The notes under the pieces: generated by a model
Seen by the model: the letters and a program-made list of their open reading frames with translations, nothing else
Told to the model about the DNA's origin: nothing
Databases searched by the model: none
DNA from: Phaeosaccion multiseriatum
Lineage: Eukaryota > Protista > Ochrophyta, other classes
Length of the DNA: 64,000 nt
Assembly: GCA_965112735.1 (NCBI GenBank)
Contig: OZ218953.1
Span: forward strand, 4,588,001-4,652,000
Direction: 5' to 3'
Shown here: in pieces, positions 35,397 to 54,423 of the stretch
Layout of the letters: every line of letters starts with the position of its first letter
Position numbering within the stretch: the first letter of the stretch is position 1
Program-made: the position numbers and the translations under genes

Positions 35397-36530
35397 ATGT
35401 CTCTCTCCTGCCATCACCACGGCAAAGGTAGACTATTCCCCCGCGGATTTCGGTCCTGAGCGAAAGAAGAAAGCTTCCTCTCATCGCCCTGTTCCCTCCC
35501 TTTCTCTGCAGGCCGTGTGCGTGTGATGAAGGTACGCAGGACCCCGGAGCGCCACGAGGTGATGGAGCTTACCGTGGAGGTCATCCTCGTCGGGCCAGTG
35601 GACGAAGCCTTCAATGAAGGCGACAACACAAAGAGTGAGTAAGCCAGGGCGCCTCGCTCTCTGCCTTTATTTTCTGACGCCTCTTCCCCCCCTTACACCT
35701 CTCTGTACTTCTGGCAGCTATCCCCCTTCTCTCCTTTGACATCTTTTCTTCCTTCTTCCCCTCTCTTTGCACCCACAGTCGTTGCTACGGACACACAGAA
35801 GAACACCGTCTACGTCCTGGCGCAGCGCCACGACTTTACCTCTGCAGAGGAGTTTGCCCTGCTACTGGCTGAGCACTTTGTGACGACATACCTAGCAGCT
35901 GTACACAAGTGCAAGATCACCATCGACGAGGACATTTGGGAGCGGCATGTTGCCTGTCCTCCAGGCAGCATGGACAAGACCGCCCACCACCATGGCTTCA
36001 TGAAGAACAGCCCCATGCGGGGCTGGGTGTGCGCCACCGCGGAGACGAAGAAAGACGGGGCAGTGGACAAGACCCTCTCCGCGGGTGTTAGAAGCCTGAC
36101 GCTCCTCAAGACCACGCAGTCCTCCTTCAAGGGCTTCATCCGCGACGAGTACACCCTGCTCCCGGAGGTGGATGATCGCTTGCTGTCTTCGTCCATCGAC
36201 GCAGATTGGTCATACGACTTGGCGACAGCGCCTCCCTACGGCGAGGCTCGTGTAGCCGCGGTGGATGCCCTTGTGCACGGCTTCCTCGGGCCCGCCGATA
36301 CGGGAGTACCCAGTGCCAGTGTTCAGGCCACACTGCTGGACATGGGCAAGGCTGCCCTCGCCGCTGTACCGAGCATGACGAGCATATCCATACAGGCACC
36401 CAACATTCACAACCTTCCGTGGCAAGGCGATGCACTTGGGGTCAAGAACGAGGACGCCAGCGGAAAACCCGACGTGTTCATACCCACGAGCGAGCCCCAC
36501 GGCTTAATCTCCGCGACCGTCGAGAGACGA
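35397..36530 (+). other. UOX: Uricase (urate oxidase) domain of the fusion
   Basis: HGK, VATDTQKNTVY, signature LLKTTQSSFKGFIRDEYTLLPEVDDRLLS, SASVQATL, PNIH, PHGLISATVER. Confidence 0.95.
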
Positions 36531-39500
36531 AGAGGAGGAGGAGGAGGCGATGATGTTAATACAGTCTTGAACGCTTCTCGTCATTGTTCCTCCTACTACT
36601 CGTTTGAGGAATGCGTTCCTCCTGCGATGGGTAGTCGACTCCTCTCGCAAGCCGCAAGCGGCTCTACGATGAGGGGTGGTAACTCTTCTGGGATCCTCTT
36701 CGCTCTGGGCGTGCCCACACTGCGGGCACCGGAGCACGCTGCCTTGACCTTCCTGGCGAGTCTTGTGCACGGGGAAGTGAGTGGTCGCCTCTCCAAGCTT
36801 CTGCAGAGGCGCGCTGAGGACCGGAGGTTCATAGACCGCCGCTCTCGCTCCCTCGCAACCTGTGCGAACCTTGCTCCGACCACAACGTCGCTTCTTGGCC
36901 ACCAGGACCAGCACGGGAGGGTGGTGGTGGGCCCCCTCAGGACAGACTACGCTAGCGTGGCGGAGGAGGGCGAGCAGCCCGTCGCTCCCCTTCCTGCGCA
37001 CCTCGACCTGTCCACCTCCCATGTGACTGTGTTTGGCCCGGCGGACTCGGCGGAGGCCTGCAGGGAGTATCTACACGCATTTCAGGATAGCAGAACCAGC
37101 AGCAGTGGTAGCGGCAGCGGCAGCAGCGGCAGCAGCGGCGCGAATAAGGCAGGGAAGTGGGGGGCCGACCTGGAAGATTCACAGACTCCGTTTCCAGAGC
37201 TCGTGCAGGCTGCTGCCGAAAACTTGACCGAGAGCTACCGCCTGATTCGGGATGAGAACACTGGAGCGGCAGGGGCAGGGCACGGGGCTGGACTGTCCTT
37301 CCCTGTTGTGCGGCTGCCTGGCTTGGGGTTGCCTTCTACGCATGCCTTCATCGCCGCCTCAGGTACGCCCGTGCCCCTCCACCTCTTCATCTTCGCACTA
37401 CACGTGTTTCACAACTGGCAAGACCCCGCGGCGCGATGCTTCTACCTACCCAAGTTGGAGAACGAAGAGGAGGCGGCATACTTTGCCTTCCTCATTAAGC
37501 TCGCTGAGGAAAGGCTTAAGGAGCTCCATCCGTCATATGAAATGGGCTCGGTGCGCGTCTTTTGCGTGATTGAAAGCGGTCGTGCCATCTTCCGAGTGCG
37601 TGAGATTGCAGAGGCGCTGTACCCTTACTTCTGTGGCGCCAGTCTCGGATGGTAAGTCACTGTCAGCCCACTGCCAACCCATTTTCAACTCAAACACCCA
37701 CCGTCAACCCAACCCTTTTACCAACCCAGGCACGACTACTTGGCATCCACCTCTCGCCTCTTCAAGGAGGCCGAACACTGGATCATGCCTTCCAAAACAG
37801 ACCCAGACATAGTGGTCAAGCATATCCGCGCACAGCACGTGCTGCTAGGAGACGTGGTGGGGCGGGGCATGGGTGCTGTGAGCGTTGGTGGTATGTATGG
37901 CGTCGTCCCTGTGAGCGACGACCCCACTTCCGCTTCGTATCAAGTGAGTCTGCGCGGACTGTTCAAGGACGTGATTGCTCAGCTCAGACGCGGTTTGGTG
38001 GGGTTCTGGGTGGCGTATGCGCCCTTCGCCCGCATTGGAACTGAGATGGTTCGCGTGTGGCTGCTGGCAGAAGGAGGAGGTGGAGGTGGAGGCGGGGGAG
38101 GAGGAGGAGGAGGAGGAGGAGGAGGAGGCATCATGGAGGTGGTAAAGAGGCATCTCACCGTACCAGAGTATGTGGAGCAAGTAGCAGCCTTCCTTGCACA
38201 AGGAGACGAACAGAGGGAGGCAGCAGCAGCAGCAGCAGCAGCAGACTTGGTGCTTGACGAGAGCCCGAGGCGGCCGCCCAGTGGAGAGGCGCTCGAGTCG
38301 CTGCTTCGAGTCAACATCTCGCACTGCCTGGTCTACCTCAACGAATGGCTACAGGGCAGCGGGAACATCTCGCTGGAGTCCGAGATTGAAGGTGAGAGGA
38401 GGGAGAGGAAGGGTTTTGCTTTTGTTTGGGGAGGGGGGGGGGCGAATGAGTTGTCGAGTTGCGTTGTGGGGCCAAGTACTTTTGGCTTCGTAGTAACGGC
38501 ACCGCTCATGCCCTCCGCCAATGGACCACCGAAGAAGGAATCGCAGCTTAATGCCCTTCATCCTGACCCCGTCAGTATCTTGTTTGCTTGCATACGTTGC
38601 TTACTTGCTTGCTTGGCTGGCTTTGCTTGCTCTGCTTGCTACTTGCTTTGCTTTGCTTTGTGTGCTTGCTTTGCTTGCGTTGCTTGCCCTGCTTATTGCT
38701 GACTTGCTTTGCCCTGCTTTGTCCTGCTTTGCCCTGCTTAACATGGTCTGTTTCCTTGCCTTTGCTTGCTTGTCTCTTGCCACCACTCCAACTCAGGCAT
38801 TCCGGTGCGGGTGGTGGACGATCTCGCGACTGTGGAGCGGTCCCGCTGGAGTCTGTGGAGGGAGCTCAAGGCGGGCAGGCTGGGTATGAGCCGCTTCTTG
38901 ACAGCCACTTTCGAAGAGGCACTCAGTATCTCCAAGGCAAACACCAACAGCAACACCAACATCAACACAAACACCAACAAGCAGCAACAGCAGGGGAGCT
39001 CCTCCCCCCAGTTGGGCTCCCCAAAGTCAACGAAGTGGCAGTCCGTGGCCTTGGCCGTCTTTCTGAAGCTCATGACGGAGCTCGAGTCCCCCGCGGAGTT
39101 CGTGCCCGAGCTGCTCATGCCCTTCACGTCGGCCCTCATTCGGCAGGCTTCGGACCCGCTTGCTGCTATGCAGAGCTGCGGAGGAGACGAGATGCTGGTA
39201 CTCCGTCCACCCCTGAGGCAGTGGTGCTACTACTTTAAGATGTGTGGGTGTACGCGCTTTGCAGATGAGGTGTCACAGAGGGACGTGTTGCTAGATGTAC
39301 AACACGTCAAGCAGGTGATCGGGACCTTCAGCAAGGAGGAGGTTGTGCAGGCAGCCAACTTCAATGGAGATATCGGCGGCAGCCCCGAAGGGATGGACAG
39401 CTTGGCCAGAGAAGAGCAGGCTAAGGTGCTGAACGGAGAGGAGGGGGTGCGGCAGGCTCTGCGCGAGCTCGGGCAACAGTACCTTGCCAAATTCGACGGG

Positions 39501-42500
39501 ATGAAGTTCATGGTCTCGGCCAAAGGAAAGTCGGGGCCAGAGCTGCTTCCCCTTCTCGAGGCACGCATCAAGAACAGCGAGGAGCAGGAGGTGCAGCATG
39601 CGAGGGAGGCCCTTAGGGAGATCACAGTCAAGAGGCTGACCTCAAAGCCGCCCGACTGCGCAAGGGTCAGGATGGAGGCTCTCTTGGCCAAGCATGGAGT
39701 TGCTGGTGCGTCCATTGCCCTGGTGTCTAGCTCCTCTTCCTCCTCCTCCTCCCCCTCCTCCCTCTCCTCGGCCGCCGCCACCAAGACCCATCAGCAGCAG
39801 CACATTGTGCTGGGTCTACGGGACAAGGCCTCGGATGAGCCCGTCACAGCGGATACGTGCTTTGAAGTGGCGTCTCTGAGCAAGTCCGTGGGCACGGCGT
39901 TTAGCATGGAGTACTTTCGGTCGCGAGGCGTCTCCATCTTTGACACCCCTGCCAACGCATTGCTCAAGAAGGGGGGCTCCTCCTTCCGCCTGAGTGGGCC
40001 GTACGCAGAGGAAGTGATGCTGGTACACCTCATGTCACACTCGGCACTCAACCTGCACTACGTGAACGGAGTGCCGCTGGATAGGGAGGATGCGAATGGA
40101 GGCTTGCCCGACATTCGACTACTCATCGAGGGGTGCTCTGATCCCGTTTCGTACACGCCCATCGAAGGTGAGAGAGAGATGGAGAGAGAGAGGCACGGCA
40201 TATCATCAATGAGAGAGAGAGGCACGGCATATCATCAATGAGAGAGAGAGGCACGACGTGTCACCATTGTGGTGCTTGAGTCCCCTTCCTCACTTCCTTC
40301 TTGTGGCCTGTCTGCCTTTCACCATCTCTCCCTTCTGTCTCTATCCCCATCTCTCTCTCCCTTTCCTCTCTCTCTCTCTCTGTACCCCCCCTCTCTCTCG
40401 TCTCTCCCCCCTCACTCGCCCTCTCTCGTGTAGTGCTCGGCCCGCCCGGTGAGGTGTTCCGCTACAGCGGGGGAGGCTTCCTCGTGCTACAACACATCAT
40501 CGAGAGCCTGGAGGGCGGCAAGAGGAGCATCGCTTCCATCTCACAGCCCTTCATTGACAGCCTTTTCGGCACTGCTGTATCACCAACTGCTGCTGCTTCT
40601 GGTGCTACTACTGGTGGTCCCGATCCGGAAGTAGCCTCGTCCTCCCTCTTCACCTTCGACCCCAACCCCAACCCCAGCAGCAATTTCAAGGTGGCTTGCG
40701 GCTACGACAGCGAAGGCGCAGTCATCCCGGGCACGCGCCTCGTCTTCCCAGCGTTTGCTGCAGGAGCGTTGGCGACTCCGGCGGCCATCCTGCACTTCTT
40801 GCAGACCCTCAGCGCGGCCTACGCAGACCCGAGAGGAGGGGGAGGAGCGGGGGCACTCGCAGGCCCTATTTCGCACGACACGGCTGTACTCATGCTGCAC
40901 GGGACGGACAAGGGGTGCCTCGACTTTATGGGTTGTAAGATGGGGGTGGGTATCTTCACGGCAGAGGCGGGTGGGAATCGCTTTGCCGTCCACCAGGGGG
41001 CGAACGACGGTTTCCGCGCGCTCTTTTTGCACTGCTACAAGGGCCCTGACGTGGGGACGGGTGTTGTGGTGTGCGCCAATGGAGGCAACAAGGCCGTGGG
41101 CTTCATCAGTGAAGCGGTGCAGGAGGTGCTAAAAGTGCTCAAGGTTACGGGTGTGGACTGCCATCTCTTCGACCGCCCACCGCCTTCCCTCCAGCAGGGG
41201 GGTGCCAAGACGGTTGTCAAACAGGAGGACCTTGTCAATTTGGGCTATAAGCAAGCCCTCTTTTCGGCCTTCAGGCCCGACCTGCCCGCGAGAATCGAGG
41301 ACGTCGACCCCGAGGCCTCAACGGGTGCCAACGACCCGCGTTGGGAGTACAACGGAGCCCGAGACGCGAAGGTGGTGTGTGTCACCAACCAGGCCTTTGC
41401 ACGGGCGGACAACCTTTGCTCGGCGCGCTTACCACTCTTCGACCCGGCGTTGTTTGGCCCTCAGGGCAAGGTGATGGACAGTTGGGAGACCACCCGACAC
41501 AACCCGGCCGTGTGCGATGAGCTTGTGCTGGCCCTGAAGGAGAGCATGGCAGTGAGCTTTGTCATGCTCTCTACCAAGTACCACACCGGAAACAACTTCA
41601 AAGAGGTAGAGGTGTTGGGTTTCCAATCCGAGGCGGCGGCGGTGGCAGCGATGCTGACCAAGAGCGGCGCTTCCTCTGCTTCTGCTTTGGGTGCTGTGGA
41701 GGGGGAGGGAGTGGGAGGAGGAGCGGTGCTGCTGCTGCCCAGGCACATGCTGAAGGGCCACTCGGAGCTCCGGGTGACTGTGGACCCCTCCACCTCCACC
41801 AAACCTGTGTCGCACATTCTCGTGCGCGCCTTCCCAGACGGGGGGCTGACTCGACTCGGCCTCTTCGACCGGAGCCTGCCCCAGGCGTTTCTCGAGGGCT
41901 TTGCTCCTGCTGCAGAGGCCGTGCCCATCCCCTGCTCGGACCCCGTACCTGCGCCGCTCAAGCCCCTCGCGATGGAGTACAACACCCCCAGCGAGGAGGA
42001 CATTGCTGCCAATCTGGCGACGATTCAGGTCGGGGAGGAGTACAACGTGGCAGGAAGGGCCTTTGGAGGGCGCTTCGTGTCGGCCACCAACGAGCATTAC
42101 GGGCCTGCCAGTGCTGCCCTGAGCCCCTACCCTCCCCTCGACATGTTTGACGGTTTCGAGTCGGCCAGGAGCCACAACCGAGAGAACGAGGAGTGCATCA
42201 TCGTGGCGCTTGCCAAGCCCTGCCTTCTCCATCGCATCGAGCTCGACTTTACCTTTTTTGTCAACAACGCTCCTCTGGAAGTCGCCATCTGGGGCATTGA
42301 CGCAAGCAGTATGAGCGGCAGTACGAATGGCGGTGGCGGTGGCGGTGACTTGCCCTGGAGTGAGGCAGCGCAGATGGTGGGTCGAACGTGTGTCAAGGCC
42401 TTCGCGGCCAATGTCAAGACCTTCGAGTTCCGCGGCGAGCAGCAGCAGAAGGTGACGGTGGATCACCTCAAGATCTCGCTGTACCCTGACGGAGGAGTCA

Positions 42501-42532
42501 ACCGCATACGGGCCTTCACCATGAAGGAGTAA
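35397..42532 (+). CDS. Five-domain purine-catabolism fusion protein: uricase + malate synthase-like + OHCU decarboxylase + beta-lactamase-fold serine hydrolase + allantoicase (~2052 aa)
   Basis: Exons 35397-35427, 35512-35634, 35779-37651, 37730-38391, 38797-40167, 40434-42532; all GT-AG and phase-compatible; total 6159 nt = 2053 codons with no internal stop. Splicing restores conserved motifs across junctions (HGK|GRVRV, GDNTK|IVATDTQKN, GASLG|WHDY). Confidence 0.9.
36730..39150 (+). other. Divergent malate synthase-like TIM-barrel domain of the fusion
   Basis: TVFGP, ADLEDS, VVRLPG, FYLPKLENEEEA, CVIES, GASLGWHDYLAS, VGGMYG, GFWVA, NISHCLVYLNEWLQGSG, DDLATVERSRWSLW parallel malate synthase A motifs (DFEDS, YLPKLE, LIET, GRWDY, GGM, GTWVAHP, EDAATAEISR). 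Confidence 0.85.
39215..39640 (+). other. OHCU decarboxylase domain of the fusion (conserved His read as Asn in this copy)
   Basis: CGCTRFADEV, F(N)GDIG, AREEQAKV, L.ELG..Y..KF...FMVSA.GKS..E.L..LE.RI.N..EQE...A...L..I...RL fit the UraD family. Confidence 0.85.
39660..41140 (+). other. Beta-lactamase / serine hydrolase (class C, AmpC-like fold) domain of the fusion
   Basis: HGVAGASIALV, PVTADTCFEVASLSK (SxxK at 39873-39884), LMSHSAL, PPGEVFRYSGGGF, AAGALATP, HQGANDGF, GVVVCAN. Confidence 0.88.
41350..42529 (+). other. Allantoicase domain (two repeats) of the fusion
   Basis: TNQAFARADNL, GKVMDSWETTRHNP, TKYHTGN, FPDGGLTRL; second repeat GGRFVSATNEHYG, MFDGFESAR, FFVNNAP, LYPDGGVNRIRAF. Confidence 0.92.
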
Positions 42533-42792
42533 ATAGTGTGTATTGCATTGCTCTTTACATTAGTATATACATATTTACAAGTCCAAAGTGACACGCGACA
42601 GGGTGGTTTTCGCTTGCCATTGCCACACATATCCCTCTCTTTGCTCGCGGTTGCTTGTGCTGTGCTGACGCCCCCTTCAGTCACCCCTCAATCGAGCTGC
42701 TGGGCGTAAAGCACAAGAGGCAAAAGAAAGAGTTGTATGGTGTGAGGCTGAGCGCCTCTGCTCTGGGCCTTCACATGACTCAGGAGATGTGA

Positions 42793-43039
42793 CTAGCTGC
42801 CTCTGTAGGTGGAGTATCCAAACGGGTTCAGCAGCAAGGGCACATGGTAGTGCTCCGTGTCTGTGGTCTGGAACACGATTGACACCTCAGGATAGAAGCA
42901 CGCCGTACTGAGGCTCTCTTACATGTTGTAGCCGCCGGTATCGAAGTGCAGGCGATACACGCCTTGAGAAGGCACAGAGGAACGCACAGCAGGGAGCCGA
43001 GTAGCAGCAGCAGAACCAGAGCATCAGCACCACCACCAT

Positions 43040-43073
<34 letters not shown>

Positions 43074-43567
43074 GTACTCTCAGCGATGGTCAGTAAATGG
43101 CAAATTCCTGTCGCTCTTTTTTTCTTCTTCTATGCAGCAGGATACCACAACAAGGCCCAATCAATCCCGACCCCCCCTGCTGCTGGTCGTAAGTCTTCCT
43201 AAACTTTCCTCCCAGGTTCTCTCACCCGGCTCTAGAAGGACGTCGCTCTTCAGCAGATCCTTCACCCGCCCATCGTTGTCCGTCATCCTTTCGCTCGCCG
43301 CCCATGAGAGAGGAGGGTCGTAGAGAATAAGAAGGATTAGAAGAGCACGGGGGACCCGATCCGGAGCTCACACCCTCAAACAGCATTTGTTCTCTTTCTC
43401 CTCCTTACTCTATCAGATGTTGCTCACCCTCGGCAATGAGGGTCCATTCCTCTGTTGACTCCCCTGGCTGGTGGTCTCGCTCTGCTGCTGGGAGCGTGGG
43501 AGCGAGATCATCCTCACTCCCGCGGTAGGCTTTCCCAAGCTCATGTCCAGGATAGATACGAGAGGTA
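42793..43567 (-). pseudogene. HIU hydrolase pseudogene (copy in duplication unit 1)
   Basis: Retains ...[19 protein letters not shown]. However, the last exon reads GGC TAC AAC ATG TAA, an in-frame stop where the intact copy has GGC TAC TAC GAG. Exon 1 has indels and no matching start codon. Confidence 0.88.
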
Positions 43568-43655
43568 TTGAAATTTGAACCATGTAGTGGATTGCCCTTT
43601 TGGTGCCATCTGTGCTGCAAAAGTAACGACTTTTTACATCACCTCAACTTTTCCT

Positions 43656-44140
43656 CAGCCCCATGCACGCCTCATTTTTGCTCTGGGCCGCTAGGCCGCT
43701 CGGCCTTCGGCCGAAATAGGCCTAGGCCGGCGGCCTCCGGCCGCTCTAGGCCGCTCACTCTTCAGTCCTAGGCGGCCTCTAGGCAGCCTCCCAGTGACCG
43801 TGGGCGCGTGCGTGGTGCCGCCCAGCCAGTGGCTGGGTAGCAGCACACCTGTAAGCCTGCACTTTGCACTTTTTTTGCACTCCTCGTAGGGCCAGCGAGG
43901 CGGAAAGAGACAACTACGCCTCACTTCAAATCCCATGCAATACATTTGCTTAAACTGACTACTCTTTGCACTCTGGGCACTTCCACCGTCCGCCTAGTTG
44001 GCGTCTGCCCTAGGCCGCGGGCCTCCGGCCCGCCTAGGCCGCCTAGGCGGCAGCATATAAATAGGCCGAGGGCCTACGGCCCTCGCTAGGCCGGGCAATT
44101 TTCCCAAATAGGCCTAGGCCGCTAGGCGTGCATGGGGCTG
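43656..44140. mobile_element. Non-autonomous TIR element (485 bp) with perfect 17-bp TIRs and CCTAGGCCG subterminal repeats
   Basis: CAGCCCCATGCACGCCT ... AGGCGTGCATGGGGCTG; many CTAGGC/GCCTAG motifs near both ends; absent from the paralogous spacer in unit 2; no TSD seen. Confidence 0.72.
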
Positions 44141-44850
44141 CGTCAGTCTCCTCCGAGCGAAGCAAAGGGACGCCGTGTATGCTTTCGATTCCTCTGCCTT
44201 ATCTCCTGCGCGCAGATTGACCGCTGAAGACCCACAGCCAGCCGGTGTTTTTGACCCCATAGCACGTGCATAGACTGGCAAGTTCAGATGTTCGGCCTGC
44301 CTACTAAGGAATGTGGGTGGCGAGTGAACATGCTGCTCAGGTTTTTTCCGGCCCTGCGGGGGCCTAGGCGAGTGCTTTCAAATAAACACCTGAGCTGACG
44401 GCCCTAATGCACCATATTACAGTTCCATGACCAAGGGTACCAAGTGGTACCGCGCCGGGTCATTATCATTGATGACCCTCTACCTCGTCACCCCACCAGT
44501 AATTTGCCGTAAGATGGCAATTAACGGCTTCGCCCCCCGGCACGTTCCGTTCCCGCTCAACTCGCATCCTTTCTTCCTTAAACACAGGGCTCATACAGCC
44601 AGCAGATACAAAGGTAGACGGCACACATGATGGGTCTTTACCTTGAGTTCCTTATTTTAATGCGCTCTGTCCACAGGAGCCCTGCTGCTGCTACACATTT
44701 CCGCACAAAACCCAAAGGTCGTCAGCACAACTGCTCACTGTCCTTACCCCCCCCACTCTCCAACTCCGCTCTTCCTTCCTCACAGCGTCCCTACTATTCA
44801 GGGCCAAGCCTTCGTTTGACCAGAAGCTGTTACACTGCTGAGCGGGGGGG

Positions 44851-47800
44851 ATGCCGCCCAATGCGGACGACCGGCAGGATAACGGAGTGGACGAGTGCAG
44901 GCAGCCGGCGAGGCGAGCTTTCAGAGGGTCAATCATACATTCGTTGGGCCTCGATGATCTTGAGATCGTCCCAGATGGGCTTATTATTGTCGATGCGGAT
45001 GGAGTTATTCTGCAGCTGCTGGACCTCAGCAGCGAGGAGAGCACTTTGGCCACTTCTCGCCTCTTCAAGGAGGCCGAACACTGGATCATGCCTTCCAAAA
45101 CAGACCCAGACATAGTGGTCAAGCATATCCGCGCACAACACGTGCTGCTAGGAGACGTGGTGGGGCGGGGCATGGGTGGTGTGAGCGTTGCTGGCATGTA
45201 TGGCGTCGTCCCTGTGAGCGACGACCCCACTTCCGCTTCGTATCAAGTGAGTCTGCGCGGACTGTTCAAGGACGTGATTGCTCAGCTCAGACGCGGTTTG
45301 GTGAGGTTCTGGGTGGCGTATGCGCCCTTCGCCCGCATTGGAACTGAGGTGGTTCGCGTGTGGCTGCTGGCAGAAGGAGGTGGAGGCGGAGGAGGAGGAG
45401 GAGGAGGAGGAGGAGGAGGCATCATGGAGGTGGTAAAGAGGCATCTCACCGTACCAGAGTATGTGGAGCAAGTAGCAGCCTTCCTTGCACAAGGAGACGA
45501 ACAGAGGGAGGCAGCAGCAGCAGCAGCAGCAGCAGACTTGGTGCTTGACGAGAGCCCGAGGCGGCCGCCCAGTGGAGAGGCGCTCGAGTCGCTGCTTCGA
45601 GTCAACATCTCGCACTGCCTGGTCTACCTCAACGAATGGCTACAGGGCAGCGGGAACATCTCGCTGGAGTCCGAGATTGAAGGTGAGAGGAGGGAGAGGA
45701 AGGGTTTTGCTTTTGTTTGGGGAGGGGGGGGGGCGAATGAGTTGTCGAGTTGCGTTGTGGGGCCAAGTACTTTTGGCTTCGTAGTAACGGCACCGCTCAT
45801 GCCCTCCGCCAATGGACCACCGAAGAAGGAATCGCAGCTTAATGCCCTTCATCCTGACCCCGTCAGTATCTTGTTTGCTTGCATACGTTGCTTACTTGCT
45901 TGCTTGGCTGGCTTTGCTTGCTCTGCTTGCTACTTGCTTTGCTTTGCTTTGTGTGCTTGCTTTGCTTGCGTTGCTTGCCCTGCTTATTGCTGACTTGCTT
46001 TGCCCTGCTTTGTCCTGCTTTGCCCTGCTTAACATGGTCTGTTTCCTTGCCTTTGCTTGCTTGTCTCTTGCCACCACTCCAACTCAGGCATTCCGGTGCG
46101 GGTGGTGGACGATCTCGCGACTGTGGAGCGGTCCCGCTGGAGTCTGTGGAGGGAGCTCAAGGCGGGCAGGCTGGGTATGAGCCGCTTCTTGACGGCCACT
46201 TTCGAAGCGGCACATCGCATCTCCAAGGCAAACACCAACACCGTCACCAACAAGCAGAAGCAGCAGCAGCAGCAGCAACAGCAGGGGAGCTCCTCCCCCC
46301 AGTTGGGCTCCCCAAAGTCAACGAAGTGGCAGTCCGTGGCCTTGGCCGTCTTTCTGAAGCTCATGACGGAGCTCGAGTCCCCCGCGGAGTTCGTGCCCGA
46401 GCTGCTCATGCCCTTCACGTCGGCCCTCATTCGGCAGGCTTCGGACCCGCTTGCTGCTATGCAGAGCTGCGGAGGAGACGAGATGCTGGTACTCCGTCCA
46501 CCCCTGAGGCAGTGGTGCTACTACTTTGAGATGTGTGGGTGTACGCGCTTTGCAGATGAGGTGTCACAGAGGGACGTGTTGCTAGATGTACAACACGTCA
46601 AGCAGGTGATAGGGACCTTCAGCAAGGAGGAGGTTATGCAGGCAGCCAGCTTCCATGGAGATATCGGCGGCAGCCCCGTAGGGATGGACAGCATGGCCAG
46701 AGAAGAGCAGGCTAAGGTGCTGAACGGAGAGGAGGGGGTGCGGCAGGCTCTGCGCGAGCTCGGGCAACGGTACCTTGCCAAATTCGACGGGCTGAAGTTC
46801 ATGGTCTCGGCCAAAGGAAAGTCGGGGCCAGAGCTGCTTGCCCTTCTCGAGGCACGCATCAAGAACAGCGAGGAGCAGGAGGTGCAGCATGCGAGGGAGG
46901 CCCTTAGGGAGATCACAGTCAAGAGGCTGACCTCAAAGCCGCCCGACTGCGCAAGGGTCAGGATGGAGGCTCTCTTGGCCAAGCATGGAGTTGCTGGTGC
47001 GTCCATTGCCCTGGTGTCTAGCTCCTCTTCCTCCTCCTCCTCCCCCTCCTCCCTCTCCTCGGCCGCCGCCACCAAGACCCATCAGCAGCAGCACATTGTG
47101 CTGGGTCTACGGGACAAGGCCTCGGATGAGCCCGTCACAGCGGATACGTGCTTTGAAGTGGCGTCTCTGAGCAAGTCCGTGGGCACGGCGTTTAGCATGG
47201 AGTACTTTCGGTCGCGAGGCGTCTCCATCTTTGACACCCCTGCCAACGCATTGCTCAAGAAGGGGGGCTCCTCCTTCCGCCTGAGTGGGCCGTACGCAGA
47301 GGAAGTGATGCTGGTACACCTCATGTCACACTCGGCACTCAACCTGCACTACGTGAACGGAGTGCCGCTGGATAGGGAGGATGCGAATGGAGGCTTGCCC
47401 GACATTCGACTACTCATCGAGGGGTGCTCTGATCCCGTTTCGTACACGCCCATCGAAGGTGAGAGAGAGATGGAGAGAGAGAGGCACGGCTTATCATCAA
47501 TGAGAGAGAGCGAGGCACGGCATATCATCAATGAGAGAGAGAGGCACGGCATATCATCAATGAGAGAGAGAGGCACGGCATATCATCAATGAGAGAGAGA
47601 GGCACGACGTGTCACCATTGTGGTGCTTGAGTCCCCTTCCTCACTTCCTTCTTGTGGCCTGTCTGCCTTTCACCATCTCTCCCTTCTGTCTCTATCCCCA
47701 TCTCTCTCTCCCTTTCCTCTCTCTCTCTCTGTACCCCCCCTCTCTCTCGTCTCTCCCCCCTCACTCGCCCTCTCTCGTGTAGTGCTCGGCCCGCCCGGTG

Positions 47801-49881
47801 AGGTGTTCCGCTACAGCGGGGGAGGCTTCCTCGTGCTACAACACATCATCGAGAGCCTGGAGGGCGGCAAGAGGAGCATCGCTTCCATCTCACAGCCCTT
47901 CATTGACAGCCTTTTCGGCACTGCTGTATCACCAACTGCTGCTGCTTCTGGTGCTACTACTGGTGGTCCCGATCCGGAAGTAGCCTCGTCCTCCCTCTTC
48001 ACCTTCGACCCCAACCCCAACCACAGCAGCAATTTCATGGTGGCTTGCGGCTACGACAGCGAAGGCGCAGTCATCCCGGGCACGCGCCTCGTCTTCCCAG
48101 CGTTTGCTGCAGGAGCGTTGGCGACTCCGGCGGCCATCCTGCACTTCTTGCAGACCCTCAGCGCGGCCTACGCAGACCCGAGAGGAGGGGGAGGAGCGGG
48201 GGCACTCGCAGGCCCTATTTCGCACGACACGGCTGTACTCATGCTGCACGGGACGGACAAGGGGTGCCTCGACTTTATGGGTTGTAAGATGGGGGTGGGT
48301 ATCTTCACGGCAGAGGCGGGTGGGAATCGCTTTGCCGTCCACCAGGGGGCGAACGACGGTTTCCGCGCGCTCTTTTTGCACTGCTACAAGGGCCCTGACG
48401 TGGGGACGGGTGTTGTGGTGTGCGCCAATGGAGGCAACAAGGCCGTGGGCTTCATCAGTGAAGCGGTGCAGGAGGTGCTAAAAGTGCTCAAGGTTACGGG
48501 TGTGGACTGCCATCTCTTCGACCGCCCACCGCCTTCCCTCCAGCAGGGGGGTGCCAAGACGGTTGTCAAACAGGAGGACCTTGTCAATTTGGGCTATAAG
48601 CAAGCCCTCTTTTCGGCCTTCAGGCCCGACCTGCCCGCGAGAATCGAGGACGTCGACCCCGAGGCCTCAACGGGTGCCAACGACCCGCGTTGGGAGTACA
48701 ACGGAGCCCGAGACGCAAAGGTGGTGTGTGTCACCAACCAGGCCTTTGCACGGGCGGACAACCTTTGCTCGGCGCGCTTACCACTCTTCGACCCGGCGCT
48801 GTTTGGCCCTCAGGGCAAGGTGATGGACAGTTGGGAGACCACCCGACACAACCCGGCCGTGTGCGATGAGCTTGTGCTGGCCCTGAAGGAGAGCATGGCA
48901 GTGAGCTTTGTCATGCTCTCTACCAAGTACCACACCGGAAACAACTTCAAAGAGGTAGAGGTGTTGGGTTTCCAATCCGAGGCGGCGGCGGTGGCAGCGA
49001 TGCTGACCAAGAGCGGCGCTTCCTCTGCTTCTGCTTTGGGTGCTGTGGAGGGGGAGGGAGTGGGAGGAGGAGCGGTGCTGCTGCTGCCCAGGCACATGCT
49101 GAAGGGCCACTCGGAGCTCCGGGTGACTGTGGACCCCTCCACCTCCACCAAACCTGTGTCGCACATTCTCGTGCGCGCCTTCCCAGACGGGGGGCTGACT
49201 CGACTCGGCCTCTTCGACCGGAGCCTGCCCCAGGCGTTTCTCGAGGGCTTTGCTCCTGCTGCAGAGGCCGTGCCCATCCCCTGCTCGGACCCCGTACCTG
49301 CGCCGCTCAAGCCCCTCGCGATGGAGTACAACACCCCCAGCGAGGAGGACATTGCTGCCAATCTGGCGACGATTCAGGTCGGGGAGGAGTACAACGTGGC
49401 AGGAAGGGCCTTTGGAGGGCGCTTCGTGTCGGCCACCAACGAGCATTACGGGCCTGCCAGTGCTGCCCTGAGCCCCTACCCTCCCCTCGACATGTTTGAC
49501 GGTTTCGAGTCGGCCAGGAGCCACAACCGAGAGAACGAGGAGTGCATCATCGTGGCGCTTGCCAAGCCCTGCCTTCTCCATCGCATCGAGCTCGACTTTA
49601 CCTTTTTTGTCAACAACGCTCCTCTGGAAGTCGCCATCTGGGGCCTTGACGCAAGCAGTATGAGCGGCAGTACGAATGGCGGTGGCGGTGGCGGTGACTT
49701 GCCCTGGAGTGAGGCAGCGCAGATGGTGGGTCGAACGTGTGTCAAGGCCTTCGCGGCCAATGTCAAGACCTTCGAGTTCCGCGGCGAGCAGCAGCAGAAG
49801 GTGATGGTGGATCACCTCAAGATCTCGCTGTACCCTGACGGAGGAGTCAACCGCATACGGGCCTTCACCATGAAGGAGTAA
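44851..49881 (+). CDS. Chimeric gene: guanine deaminase N-terminal 67 aa fused in frame to the malate synthase C-half + OHCU decarboxylase + beta-lactamase-like domain + allantoicase (~1433 aa)
   Basis: Exons 44851-45682, 46088-47458, 47783-49881 (4302 nt, open). MPPNAD...SSEESTLA matches the protein starting at 51387; TSRLFKEAEHW onward matches the fusion gene. Confidence 0.82.
47474..47607. repeat. ~29-31 bp intronic minisatellite (GAGAGAGAGGCACGGCATATCATCAAT): about 4 units here, about 2 in the paralogous intron (40183-40256)
   Basis: Direct reading of both introns. Confidence 0.8.
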
Positions 49882-50141
49882 ATAGTGTGTATTGCATTGC
49901 TCTTTACATTAGTATATACATATTTACAAGTCCAAAGTGACACGCGACAGGGTGGTTTTCGCTTGCCATTGCCACACATATCCCTCTCTTTGCTCGCGGT
50001 TGCTTGTGCTGTGCTGACGCCCCCTTCAGTCACCCCTCAATCGAGCTGCTGGGCGTAAAGCACAAGAGGCAAAAGAAAGAGTTGTATGGTGTGAGGCTGA
50101 GCGCCTCTGCTCTGGGCCTTCACATGACTCAGGAGATGTGA

Positions 50142-50382
50142 CTAGCTGCCTCTGTAGGTGGAGTATCCAAACGGGTTCAGCAGCAAGGGCACATGGTAGT
50201 GCTCCGTGTCTGTGGTCTGGAACACGATTGACACCTCAGGATAGAAGCACGCCGTACTGAGGCTCTCGTAGTAGCCGCCGGTATCGAAGTGCAGGCGATA
50301 CACGCCTTGAGAAGGTACAGAGGAACGCACAGCAGGGAGCCGAGTAGCAGCAGCAGAACCAGAGCATCAGCACCACCACCAT

Positions 50383-50419
<37 letters not shown>

Positions 50420-50879
50420 GTACTCTTACTCTCAGCGATGGTCAGTAAATGGCAAATTCCTGTCGCTCTTTTTTTCTTCTTCTATGCAGCAGGATACCAC
50501 AACAAGGCCCAATCAATCCCGACCCCCCCTGCTGCTGGTCGTAAGTCTTCCTAAACTTTTCTCCCAGGTTCTCTCACCCGGCTCTAGAAGGACGTCGCTC
50601 TTCAGCAGATCCTTCACCCGCCCATCATTGTCCGTCACCCCTTCGCCGCCCATGAGAGGAGGAGGGTAGAGAACAACACAAGTGAGCGACCTGACTGGAA
50701 GAGCACGGGGGACCCGAAGCTCATTCATTTGTTCCTTACTCTATCAGATGTTGCTCACCCTCGGCAATGAGGTTCCACTCCCCTGTTGACTCCCCTGGCC
50801 TCTGCAGGGAGATCCTCACTCCCGTGGCAGGCTTTCCCAGGCTCGTGTCCAGGATATGCGAGGTGATCTGGCTCACCAT
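50142..50879 (-). CDS. uraH: 5-hydroxyisourate (HIU) hydrolase, transthyretin-like, 115 aa (exons 50759-50879, 50578-50640, 50142-50305)
   Basis: [18 protein letters not shown]|VTDNDGR, G|[36 protein letters not shown] (YRGS signature). Confidence 0.93.
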
Positions 50880-51386
50880 ACTCCACGCAGCAGCAGAGCA
50901 AGAGCCAAAGGGAAATAGAATGGGGGAAGAGTGAGCGTAAAAGTGTAAAAGTAATGGATGGCAACTAACGGCTTCGTGCGTGCCAAACTCCGAAAGTTCG
51001 ATCAAAGTTCCCGCCCTCAATTATTTTTCCCTTTCTTCCTTAAAGCCAGGGCTTATACAGCCGACAGATACAAAGGTAGATGCACAAATAATGAGTCTCT
51101 ACCCTTCTTTCCTTAGTTTAATGCGCTGTGTCCACAGGAGCCCTGTTGCTGCTAACCATTCCGTACATAACCTTAAGTTCGTCAGAACAACTCCTCACAA
51201 TCCTTTCCTTCCTCTCCCCCTCTCCACCTCCTCTCTTCCTTCCTCAACCTTAAAACTGATGAACTTCTCACAGTCCTTCCCCACCTCCCCCACTCTCCAA
51301 TTCCGCTCTTCCTTCCTCACAGCATCCCTACTATTCAGCGCCAAGTCTTCGACTGACCAAAGCTGTTACGCTGCTGAGCGGGGGGC
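50880..51386. promoter_or_regulatory. Putative bidirectional promoter shared by HIU hydrolase and guanine deaminase
   Basis: 507-bp head-to-head spacer between two genes of the same pathway; a diverged copy lies upstream of the chimera (~44497-44850). Confidence 0.5.
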
Positions 51387-54300
51387 ATGCCGCCCAATGC
51401 GGACGCCCACCAGGATAACGGAGTGGACGAGTGCAGGCATCCGGCGAGGCGAGCTTTCAGAGGGTCAATCATACACTCGTTGGACCTCGATGATCTTGAG
51501 ATCATCGCGGATGGGCTTATTATTATCGACGCGGATGGAGTCATTCTGCAGCTGCTGGACCTCAGCAGCGAGGAGAGCACTTTGGCCCTGGAGAGAGACT
51601 TCTCGGAGATTGAGATCGCAGACCACAGCGGGCAGCTCATCATCCCGGGCATGATTGATGCTCACTGCCACGCACCTCAGCACCTCTTTGCCGGGACGGG
51701 CATGGACCTGCCGCTGCTGGATTGGTTGGAGCGATACACCTTCCCCACGGAGGCCAAATTCTCAGATGAGAGCATGGCTGCTGAAGTGAGCATAGACCAG
51801 AGCTTCGAGATAGAGCAGTAGGAGAGGCCTACCTCGCTTTGCAGAGTGGAGTACGCGCGCGCCCTTTCTCTCTCCCTCCCTCTCTCTCTCTCTCTGTGTG
51901 TGTGTGTATGTGTTTCTCTCTCCTTCACTCACTGTCGGTCATTCTCTGCTGGAACACACGTCGCGCCCCCACCTACCCCTCTCCGCGTCCCTCCAGGTTT
52001 ACGAGAAGGTCGTTGCTCGCCACCTCAAGTCCGGCACAACCTTTGCCTCTTACTTCGCGACCATCCACACAAACGCAAGTATAGCTCTGGCTCAGGCATG
52101 CAACAAGGCCGGCCAGCGCGCGTACATTGGCAAGGTTACAATGGACCGCAACAGCCCGGACTTCTACATTGAGGAGGCCGATGAGGCTGTCAAGGAAGCA
52201 GAGAGCTTTGCGGTTAAGGTGCTCAACATGAACGCGGTGAGTGGGCGGGTCTGAGGCGCAGAGGTTGCTCTGCCTGTTCCGTGTCCTCCTCGCCCCTTTC
52301 TTCTCTGACTCTCCCCCTCTCTTTGTCTCCCTGTGTCTGTCTCTCTGTATCTCTCTCTGTCTCTGACTGTGTGTGTGCCTCTCGCTCTCTCTCGCGCGCT
52401 CTCCCTCTCTACTGTCTCTCTCACGACGCAGCGCGGCGCCAAGCACTCTGCCGACTGCGAGGCCTTCTGGAGGGGGGAGAGCAGTGAACCCCCCCCTCCG
52501 CTGCTCAACCAGAGACACACACCCACTGTGCTACCGTGTATCACTCCGCGCTTTGTGCCCTCTTGCACGGGGGCTACGATGGAAGGCCTTGGGAACATCG
52601 CGAAGAAGTTCACTTTGCCTGTGCAGGTACGCACCAAACACGCATGCATTACGTATCATCACACACACGCACATACACGCACACACACGCGCAAGTACAC
52701 ACACACAAGCACACATACACATATGACATACACATATCACATACACACAGGCAAGAACACACACACACACATAAGCACACACACAAACGAAACGGGGAAA
52801 TCAGCGCGGAGAATTAAGAGGAGGAAGCAAAGGCGCAAGCCAAGCGTATCCACCAAACTCAAGCCCTTCCTCCACGACCTGTCCCTCCGCCCACCCCTTA
52901 CTCCTCATCTTCAGTCGCACTTGAGTGAGAACCCAGACGAGATTGCGTGGGTGAGTGAGCTCCACCCCGACTGCGAGACATACGCGCATGTGTACGAGAA
53001 GTACAATTTACTCGGCCCCTCTTCCTTCATGGCCCACTGCTGCCACTCGCCCGAGACGGAGCTGACACTGCTCGCGAAGTCTCAGACCGGAGTAGTGCAC
53101 TGCCCCTCGTCGAACCTGATGTTGTGTTCGGGTATCGCGGATATCAAGGTAAAGGCTTCACATTCAGTCCATCACTCCCTTCCTCATTTCATTACTCCCT
53201 CACTTCCTCACTCACTCACTCACTCACTCACTCACTCACTCACTCACATACACACTCATTCACTCTTTCCCTCACGTACTCACCCACTCCCTCCCTCTCT
53301 CTCTCCCTCACTCCTTCTCTTGCTTCCCCACAAATTCCCTCCCTGCCTCCTTTCCTTAGAAAATGTTGAGTATGGGCATCAATGTTGGGATCGGTACGGA
53401 TGTGGCTGGAGGCTTCAGCCCGAGTATGTTCGATGCAATGCGCCTCACCCTCCAGTCTTCCCGGTGAGTGGGATGAGAGTGAGTGAGTGAGTGAGTGAGT
53501 GAGTGAGTGAGTGAGTGAGTGAGCGAGCGAGCTTGCCTCGCTCCTCCGCCTGATCGACCAAATCTCTTCAGAACCCCGCCCTTCTTACTTTTATCCATAT
53601 CTCACTGTGGCTTTCCTTATCGTAACTTGCTCGCTGCCTCCACCTCAATCCTCAACACCTTCATATACAACCTGAAGAGCTCACGCGCTGGCCAAGTATC
53701 AGAGTCCGCTAGCGACACCCCAGACACGTAAGTTCAACACTTAGTTCAACACTTTCCTCCTTCTGGTCCAAACTACATGTGCCCGTTCGCCCTCCTCCGT
53801 TTCTGTCTTATCTTGTGCCCCCCTCCCCTCGCCGACCCCCCGATCTCCTCATTTTACTTTTTCGCTCTTCTGCGTTGTTCACAAAAGGTGTGTCGATTGC
53901 GGACACTCTGAGCGTCCGAGAAGTATTCTACTTGGCCACCGTGGGGAACGCACAGGTGTTGGGCAACGGTAAGATGCTCGGCAACTTCCTCCCCGGCAAG
54001 AAGCTCGATGCGCTGGTGGTGAATGTGGACACAGGGGCAAGCTTCGACGTGTTTGGGCATGAAGGGCTCGAGGAGCTCTTCTCCAAGTTCATCTTTCAAG
54101 GCGACGATCGGTGCATCAGCAGCGTCATTGTCAATGGGGAATATGTGCTGGGCAGGGAGAAGGCAGTGGCGGTTACGTCCGAAGAGTCGTTTGCCTCTCA
54201 TGCCGCGATTGAGACGGTGCATGTGCTGGAGGAGATGGAGAAGACTTTCAACAAGCGAGTGCAGGATAGTTCCAACTTTATCAAGACGGCCCACCCTGCC

Positions 54301-54423
54301 AGTGAGAGCGTCACGTCCAGCACCGTGTCCAGCAGCACGACGCAAACCTCGACTCGCGCTGGCACGGGCATGCGGGGTAGCACGAGTTTCGCAAACCTGC
54401 CGGAAGATGAACAAGTGAGCTAG
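51387..54423 (+). CDS. GDA: Guanine deaminase (7 exons)
   Basis: IPGMIDAHCHAPQ, LPLLDWLERYTFPTE, SGTTFASYFATIH, GKVTMD, ITPRFVPSC, Q|SHLSEN, AHCCH, HCPSSN, GIGTDVAGG, FYLATVG.A, GNFLPGKKLDA, GDDRCI; GT-AG phases consistent. Confidence 0.95.

Follow-up and report, generated by a model that had tools for sequence, protein, structure and literature searches.

Tandem duplication of a five-domain ureide gene in Phaeosaccion multiseriatum and possible complementary loss of its modules

We analysed a window of 64,000 nucleotides from the genome of Phaeosaccion multiseriatum (GenBank assembly GCA_965112735.1, contig OZ218953.1, forward-strand positions 4,588,001 to 4,652,000; coordinates below are those of the window), in which a gene fusing five ureide-pathway domains occurs as a full-length copy (copy 1) and a chimeric copy (copy 2). 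Repeat search and blastn of the window defined a tandem unit of approximately 7.3 kb, with unit 1 at 37747-45050, its partner running from 45050 to ~52350, and the interiors 98% identical. The stretch 37747-43468 is repeated at 45050-50799 with ~98% identity, and the right edge of the duplication, 44729-45051 against 51262-51587, is only 91% identical.

Copy 1 (35397-42532, forward strand) has six exons, at 35397-35427, 35512-35634, 35779-37651, 37730-38391, 38797-40167, and 40434-42532, which were placed from Pfam matches on the exon open reading frames and from the GT-AG sites and frames, the borders of exons 1-3 being set by eye. Its domains are, in order, uricase, a malate-synthase-like domain, OHCU decarboxylase (OHCU, 2-oxo-4-hydroxy-4-carboxy-5-ureidoimidazoline), a serine hydrolase of beta-lactamase fold, and allantoicase; the uricase was the only one found by a whole-genome search. 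Copy 2 (44851-49881, forward strand) starts with an ATG at 44851 and has three exons, 44851-45682, 46088-47458, and 47783-49881, as delimited by open reading frames and Pfam matches. N-terminal alignment identified its codons 1-67 as a copy of the start of the neighbouring guanine deaminase gene, and these codons continue in frame into the exon 4 homologue, which encodes the second half of the malate-synthase-like domain. The OHCU decarboxylase, serine hydrolase, and allantoicase domains follow downstream; neither the uricase nor the initial half of the malate-synthase-like barrel is present in copy 2. Every exon of either copy has an open frame.

The OHCU decarboxylase domains lie at 39215-39640 in copy 1 (PF09349, 67.9 bits) and at 46506-46931 in copy 2 (72.3 bits), both on the forward strand and both above the PF09349 gathering cut-off of 24 bits. 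An earlier note on this DNA, made from the letters alone, had reported that copy 1 reads AANFNGDIG (AAT at 39363-39365) and copy 2 AASFHGDIG (CAT at 46654-46656), and that the domains differ by nine replacements and one synonymous change; reading the sequence confirmed the motifs, and a codon-by-codon comparison gave exactly these counts. The replacements, written copy 1/copy 2, are K/E at 39237, V/M at 39345, N/S at 39357, N/H at 39363, E/V at 39387, L/M at 39402, Q/R at 39477, M/L at 39501, and P/A at 39549, and the sole synonymous change is ATC/ATA at 39318-39320. The four residue differences counted in the last exon were likewise recovered, together with two synonymous changes.

The same note had taken the His as the catalytic residue of OHCU decarboxylase, and alignment to the solved enzymes bears this out, the column falling on the conserved motif His. 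In a phmmer search against solved structures, it is the His of SAHPRIG in the Klebsiella pneumoniae enzyme (3o7h, 5uou; E = 1e-15), and by alignment it is the His of SAHPQIG in Arabidopsis 2q37. Among 133 homologues, 131 have His in this column, one has Ile, one has Gln, and none has Asn. The motif FHGDIG is near-invariant, and the His invariant (24/24), in 24 outgroup proteins with a similar domain fusion, so that copy 1, with its Asn, is the only one without the motif His that copy 2 retains. The residues E131, Q132, R181, E189, and R204, which comprise the E-Q motif and the C-terminal Arg and Glu, are kept in both copies. A further claim, that copy 1 carries a Pro in a predicted helix, was also upheld: in an AlphaFold model with a mean predicted local distance difference test (pLDDT) of 88.5, the Pro is residue 176 of a helix predicted to span 171-181, which would put it five residues before the invariant R181. 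In the zebrafish enzyme, mutation of the motif His reportedly abolishes activity. Stereospecific proton transfer through the conserved active-site His gives (S)-allantoin alone, and spontaneous decay of OHCU yields racemic allantoin (PMC13751858).

A whole-genome profile search returned the copy 1 domain with 70.3 bits and the copy 2 domain with 75.9 bits, and no third OHCU decarboxylase domain was found by it in the 67-Mb genome. One further weak match (contig 5, E = 0.03) was rejected as spurious, being located among the exons of a gene of the CYFIP/FragX_IP family at 3063000-3072999 of that contig, one exon of which gives a 20-bit match to the profile.

The polarity of the nine replacements was read from the 24 fusion-family outgroups and the 133 homologues; the outgroups are distant, at most 50% identical, and only conserved columns are safe for this purpose. 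An exhaustive protein search for a close outgroup found none above 50% identity, which was the best match, and a word search with exon 5 returned two matches only. Copy 1 is derived at 39237 (K; outgroups mostly E), at 39357 (N; mostly S or A), and at 39363 (N; His invariant). It is derived also at 39549, where Ala is the commonest residue and Pro is outside the eight commonest among 146 homologues, and probably at 39402 (L), where the nearest outgroups have Met. Copy 2 is derived, conservatively and in variable columns, at 39345 (V/M; 46636 in copy 2), 39477 (Q/R; 46768-46770), and 39501 (M/L; 46792). Outgroups are uninformative on E/V at 39387, leaving its polarity undecided, and the four exon 6 replacements lie in unconserved columns that carry no polarity information. 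Judged by these columns, the derived states in copy 1 are thus K, N, the Asn in place of His, and P, with L as a probable fifth, and those in copy 2 are the three conservative ones. A single mutational burst in one copy was rejected because derived states occur in both, and the earlier reading needs correcting to the extent that copy 2 is derived at approximately three conservative sites too.

The bases at issue and the transcription of the chimera were examined on contigs, not raw reads, of sequencing runs X1, X2, X4, and X5 placed on 44500-50400. Runs X1, X2, and X4 are DNA, since the introns are covered, and their short-read contigs contain every copy-1 letter and every copy-2 letter, with depths of approximately 1:1 where both paths were kept (79.8/169, 130/273, and 42/75). 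The check in raw reads that had been proposed against sequencing or polishing errors, run here on short-read contigs, found both variants at similar depth, and the differences are therefore not polishing errors. Run X5, from a different study, is RNA-like because 45683-46087 and 47459-47782 are skipped at GT..AG. Its contigs match copy 2 at all diagnostic sites, the His codon included; the contig covering 46291-47015 is identical to copy 2, and the one covering 44784-45084 crosses the chimeric junction without a mismatch. The chimera is transcribed and both of its introns are spliced. The X5 contigs break at 45055-45084 with an overlap of 30 nt, exactly where homology to copy 1 begins, which implies a second incoming path, presumably exon 3/4 of copy 1. 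Because contigs drop minor variants, the X5 letters are evidence for the presence of copy 2 but not for the absence of copy 1.

Substitutions between the copies are clustered. None was found in intron 4 (0/405), in intron 5 (0/264, which differs by indels only), or in exon 5 outside the OHCU domain and a low-complexity patch (0/865). Exon 6 has 6/2099, and the OHCU domain has 10/426, all inside 313 bp. Ten substitutions in 313 bp compare with six in the 3642 bp of other non-repetitive aligned sequence in 38392-42532 (Fisher p = 4e-8) and with none in the 669 bp of introns (p = 1e-5). The right edge has 12/201 in its coding part and ~11/122 upstream. The pattern is that of a gene-conversion mosaic: introns with 0/669, an OHCU island with 3.2%, and a right edge diverged by 6-9%. 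Because divergence is mosaic, with diverged edges and identical introns, the duplication is not very young. These comparisons indicate that gene conversion, as the simplest cause, homogenised the interior and left the OHCU domain and the region of the 5-hydroxyisourate (HIU) hydrolase gene as putative unconverted islands, and the near-identity of the remaining copy sequence thus appears to reflect gene conversion, not youth. Ectopic conversion from another paralogue was rejected, as the genome holds no donor.

Two repeats also differ between the copies: an Asn/Thr/Gln-rich low-complexity patch in the malate-synthase-like tail (38901-38980 and 46192-46270), by 14 bases and indels, and a poly-Gly run in exon 4, by 12 nt. 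Both are slippage-prone and escape homogenisation.

Within the OHCU domain, the proportions of nonsynonymous and synonymous differences per site, pN and pS, are 0.027 and 0.011, giving a pN/pS of 2.5, which is not significantly above 1 (P = 0.33) and rejects an omega of <=0.3 (P <=0.015). An excess of dN/dS over 1 in this domain could not be shown.

The malate-synthase-like domain differs between the copies in another manner. At the exon 3/4 junction of copy 1 (37640-37745), the GRWDY of malate synthase reads GWHDY, as seen in the sequence and in the alignment to 3cuz, so that the Arg is replaced. That Arg is Arg276 of Escherichia coli malate synthase A (MSA) and is not conserved in the ureidoglycolate-lyase group (PMC10120013). 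A canonical malate synthase was found by genome search elsewhere, on contig 7. From its motif, the domain is more likely of the ureidoglycolate-lyase type than a true malate synthase, and its reaction may be the final one in purine breakdown and not malate synthesis. In copy 2, the remnant of the domain (45136-45349, forward strand), compared codon by codon in an alignment with 13 outgroups, is derived at two near-invariant glycines, one changed to Ala (codon 45190-45192) and the other to Arg (codon 45304-45306); the one derived site of copy 1 in exon 4 is a variable one.

An HIU hydrolase gene, on the reverse strand and convergent with the fusion gene, is likewise present in each unit. Translations and alignment showed HIU hydrolase A of unit 1 (42793-43583) to be a pseudogene, with a PF00576 match interrupted by an internal stop. 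A 6-nt insertion brings in an in-frame TAA (42919-42921), exon 1 has a frameshift of net +29 nt, and the His of the HxLD motif is changed to Ser. HIU hydrolase B of unit 2 (50142-50879), by the same methods, has three exons and an open frame, with the SHILD motif and a C-terminal YRGS, and is the sole intact HIU hydrolase in the genome. A spacer of 1260 bp (43469-44728), which separates HIU hydrolase A from the chimera's start, matches nothing in unit 2 or in the rest of the window, having been either inserted into unit 1 or deleted from unit 2.

The locus is best read as a partial tandem duplication followed by complementary degeneration, and we hold this reading to be somewhat better than an even bet. 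At the sequence level, the losses are complementary: copy 1 lacks the OHCU His, and copy 2 lacks the uricase and half of the malate-synthase-like barrel. A tandem duplication of ~7.3 kb would have copied exons 4-6 of the five-domain ureide gene together with the convergent gene for HIU hydrolase and, from guanine deaminase, the promoter and first 67 codons, yielding a transcribed chimera. Gene conversion would then have kept the units nearly identical over most of their length as their redundant parts decayed in complementary fashion. The OHCU domain of copy 1 would have exchanged its motif His for Asn and a mostly acidic residue for Lys, and gained a Pro in a helix; in unit 1, HIU hydrolase would have decayed to a pseudogene, and the chimera's half malate-synthase-like domain, now useless, would be losing its conserved glycines. 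Unit 2 would thereby hydrolyse HIU and decarboxylate OHCU stereospecifically to (S)-allantoin, unit 1 would supply uricase and a complete malate-synthase-like domain, probably of ureidoglycolate-lyase type, and serine hydrolase and allantoicase would come from both. We infer that the copy 1 domain has lost activity, that the copy 2 domain is active and translated, and that complementarity keeps both units.

The subfunctionalisation proposed in the earlier note thus stands in part. Only the full-length copy has lost the His, which the transcribed and spliced chimera retains, and decay is reciprocal, but the cause of retention belongs to the inferred part. Uricase is indeed confined to copy 1, whereas the malate synthase attributed to that copy is a domain with GWHDY that resembles ureidoglycolate lyase. 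Nor is the explanation offered for retention of the chimera the only one, as unit 2 also holds the sole intact HIU hydrolase; since HIU hydrolase B could suffice alone, retention of unit 2 need not depend on the chimera.

Several observations weigh against complementary degeneration. OHCU also decays without the enzyme, and the step may therefore be dispensable. Full relaxation of both domains would also account for the pN/pS of 2.5 and for the presence of replacements on either side, and with outgroups at most 50% identical, polarity is weak at variable columns. Expression of copy 1 in X5 is implied by the contig break at 45055-45084 only, and the X5 contigs contain neither the Asn variant nor any copy-1 letter; contigs drop minor variants, and the Asn allele might be silent in that run or missing from its strain. 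Furthermore, an X5 contig that is of copy-2 type through exon 6 carries at 50267-50270 the insertion of the broken A-type HIU hydrolase, a combination for which the arrangement in the reference does not account. This A-type contig is spliced to HIU hydrolase exon 2, and no B-type sequence at 50267-50270 was found among the contigs of the runs examined. The A-type insertion beside a copy-2 exon 6 could possibly come from the path chosen in contig building, from higher expression of the pseudogene, or from a strain difference.

Some of these points lead to neutral decay without any partition of functions, which we consider possible but rather doubtful. Enzymatic OHCU decarboxylation would be dispensable, both domains would drift, and loss of the His would be incidental; unit 2 would be kept for its intact HIU hydrolase or for the dosage of serine hydrolase and allantoicase, or would simply not yet have been lost. 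In its favour, pN/pS does not differ from 1, and derived replacements are found in both domains, approximately five against three. Both OHCU and HIU decay spontaneously (PMC13751858), and unit 2 could not be dispensed with even if HIU hydrolase B were its only contribution. Yet drift in both domains sits poorly with the residues affected: copy 2 keeps every near-invariant residue, its three changes being conservative and at variable columns, whereas copy 1 loses a His conserved in 98% of homologues and gains a helix Pro. Moreover, the domain is conserved across at least 20 bacterial-type fusions, and the borders of the domain are also those of the unconverted island.

A further rival is adaptive divergence, which we regard as unlikely. 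Positive selection would have driven one of the OHCU domains, in all likelihood the copy 1 domain, toward a new or non-catalytic role, and selection against homogenisation would keep the island distinct from its converted flanks. In that improbable event, the OHCU domain would be an island that selection keeps different both ways, with the chimera as a dedicated decarboxylase driven by the copied guanine deaminase promoter and the Asn domain repurposed, for example as a non-catalytic module that binds ureide intermediates or passes them on between the uricase and the hydrolases downstream, or as one of altered stereochemistry. If true, this would be domain-level neofunctionalisation caught while gene conversion erases the other differences. 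Nine replacements against one silent change, next to introns and exons without substitutions, would suit it. So would the position of five of the nine between the His motif and the E-Q motif (39345-39402) and the want of a third paralogue able to donate the tract. However, dN/dS is not significantly above 1, and a conversion mosaic with an older unconverted tract accounts for the contrast with the flanks. The loss of an invariant catalytic residue together with a helix Pro resembles degeneration, and no new conserved motif has appeared.

An artefact, either assembly or polishing errors or two haplotypes wrongly placed in tandem, is very improbable: although X1-X4 possibly come from the assembly's own sample and contigs cannot phase the copies, both letter sets occur at ~1:1 in the short-read contigs, a contig of the independent RNA-like run bridges the chimeric junction without mismatch, and the units differ structurally, in the unique 1260-bp spacer and in the divergence of their edges.

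Gene fission by duplication and partial degeneration is known from the monkey-king genes of Drosophila. In the duplication-degeneration-complementation (DDC) model (Force et al. 1999), each duplicate loses a different module and both become needed. The algal locus departs from that model in three respects: copy 2 began as a truncated chimera, the full-length copy incurred its loss through a missense change inside a domain that is presumably still translated, and gene conversion appears to homogenise the rest of the copies. Complementary degeneration would make it a compact natural example of a multi-enzyme fusion starting to come apart, in which a tandem duplicate of part of the gene took over the promoter of a neighbour, missense and nonsense changes then struck out redundant modules in alternate copies, and gene conversion held the remainder identical. 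With two natural variants at the motif His, it is a testable case of whether enzymatic OHCU decarboxylation matters in vivo, and also of how selection and conversion interact at the scale of a domain.

Both algal OHCU domains match the OHCU decarboxylase family (UraD; PF09349, TIGR03180 UraD_2; K. pneumoniae HpxQ, 3o7h/5uou), with which they share helical fold elements, the E-Q and C-terminal Arg residues, and, in copy 2, the motif His. Unlike these enzymes, the algal domain is embedded in a multi-domain protein, and copy 1 has Asn. The fusion family reads HGDIG throughout, against HPxIG in OHCU decarboxylase, and the algal domains, at 75.9 bits, do not reach the NCBIfam equivalog cut-off of 139.4. 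The Urah-Urad fusions (allantoin synthase; 5z5m; PMC13751858) likewise join urate-pathway enzymes, OHCU decarboxylase included, in one polypeptide, although the fusion partners differ and the HIU hydrolase of the alga is a separate neighbouring gene. The malate-synthase-like ureidoglycolate lyase (PMC10120013) resembles the algal protein in a malate-synthase fold linked to uricase and allantoicase and, at the one diagnostic motif compared, in loss of the GRWDY Arg, with Trp, not Ile, as the algal replacement.

The closest relatives are bacterial-type. An exhaustive protein search found approximately 20-30 fusion proteins of ~1500 aa, in which a malate-synthase-like domain is followed by OHCU decarboxylase, then serine hydrolase, and finally allantoicase. 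These proteins (P0003, P0009, and others) share with the alga the order of four of its five domains, the FHGDIG motif, and 40-50% identity, and differ from it in having neither an N-terminal uricase nor introns; we found no published description of them. On a TARA scaffold (L004, 5760-12223), a bacterial operon carries a malate-synthase-like gene that runs into an OHCU domain, frameshifted right after AASFHG, followed by a serine hydrolase-allantoicase gene, with genes for a PuuD-type urate oxidase, HIU hydrolase, and xanthine dehydrogenase beside them. The operon shows a bacterial-type arrangement, as a fusion or an operon, for four of the alga's five domains.

The guanine deaminase gene itself, the next one downstream, lies at 51387-54423 on the forward strand, with its ATG at 51387, and was identified by NCBIfam TIGR02967 on three exon open reading frames and by Pfam Amidohydro_1. 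Its 5' end, comprising ~122 bp upstream and 67 codons, is the part copied into the start of the chimera. Together with the uricase fusion and the HIU hydrolase, it makes the locus a purine-catabolism cluster of the alga, one that is related to the bacterial-type operon.

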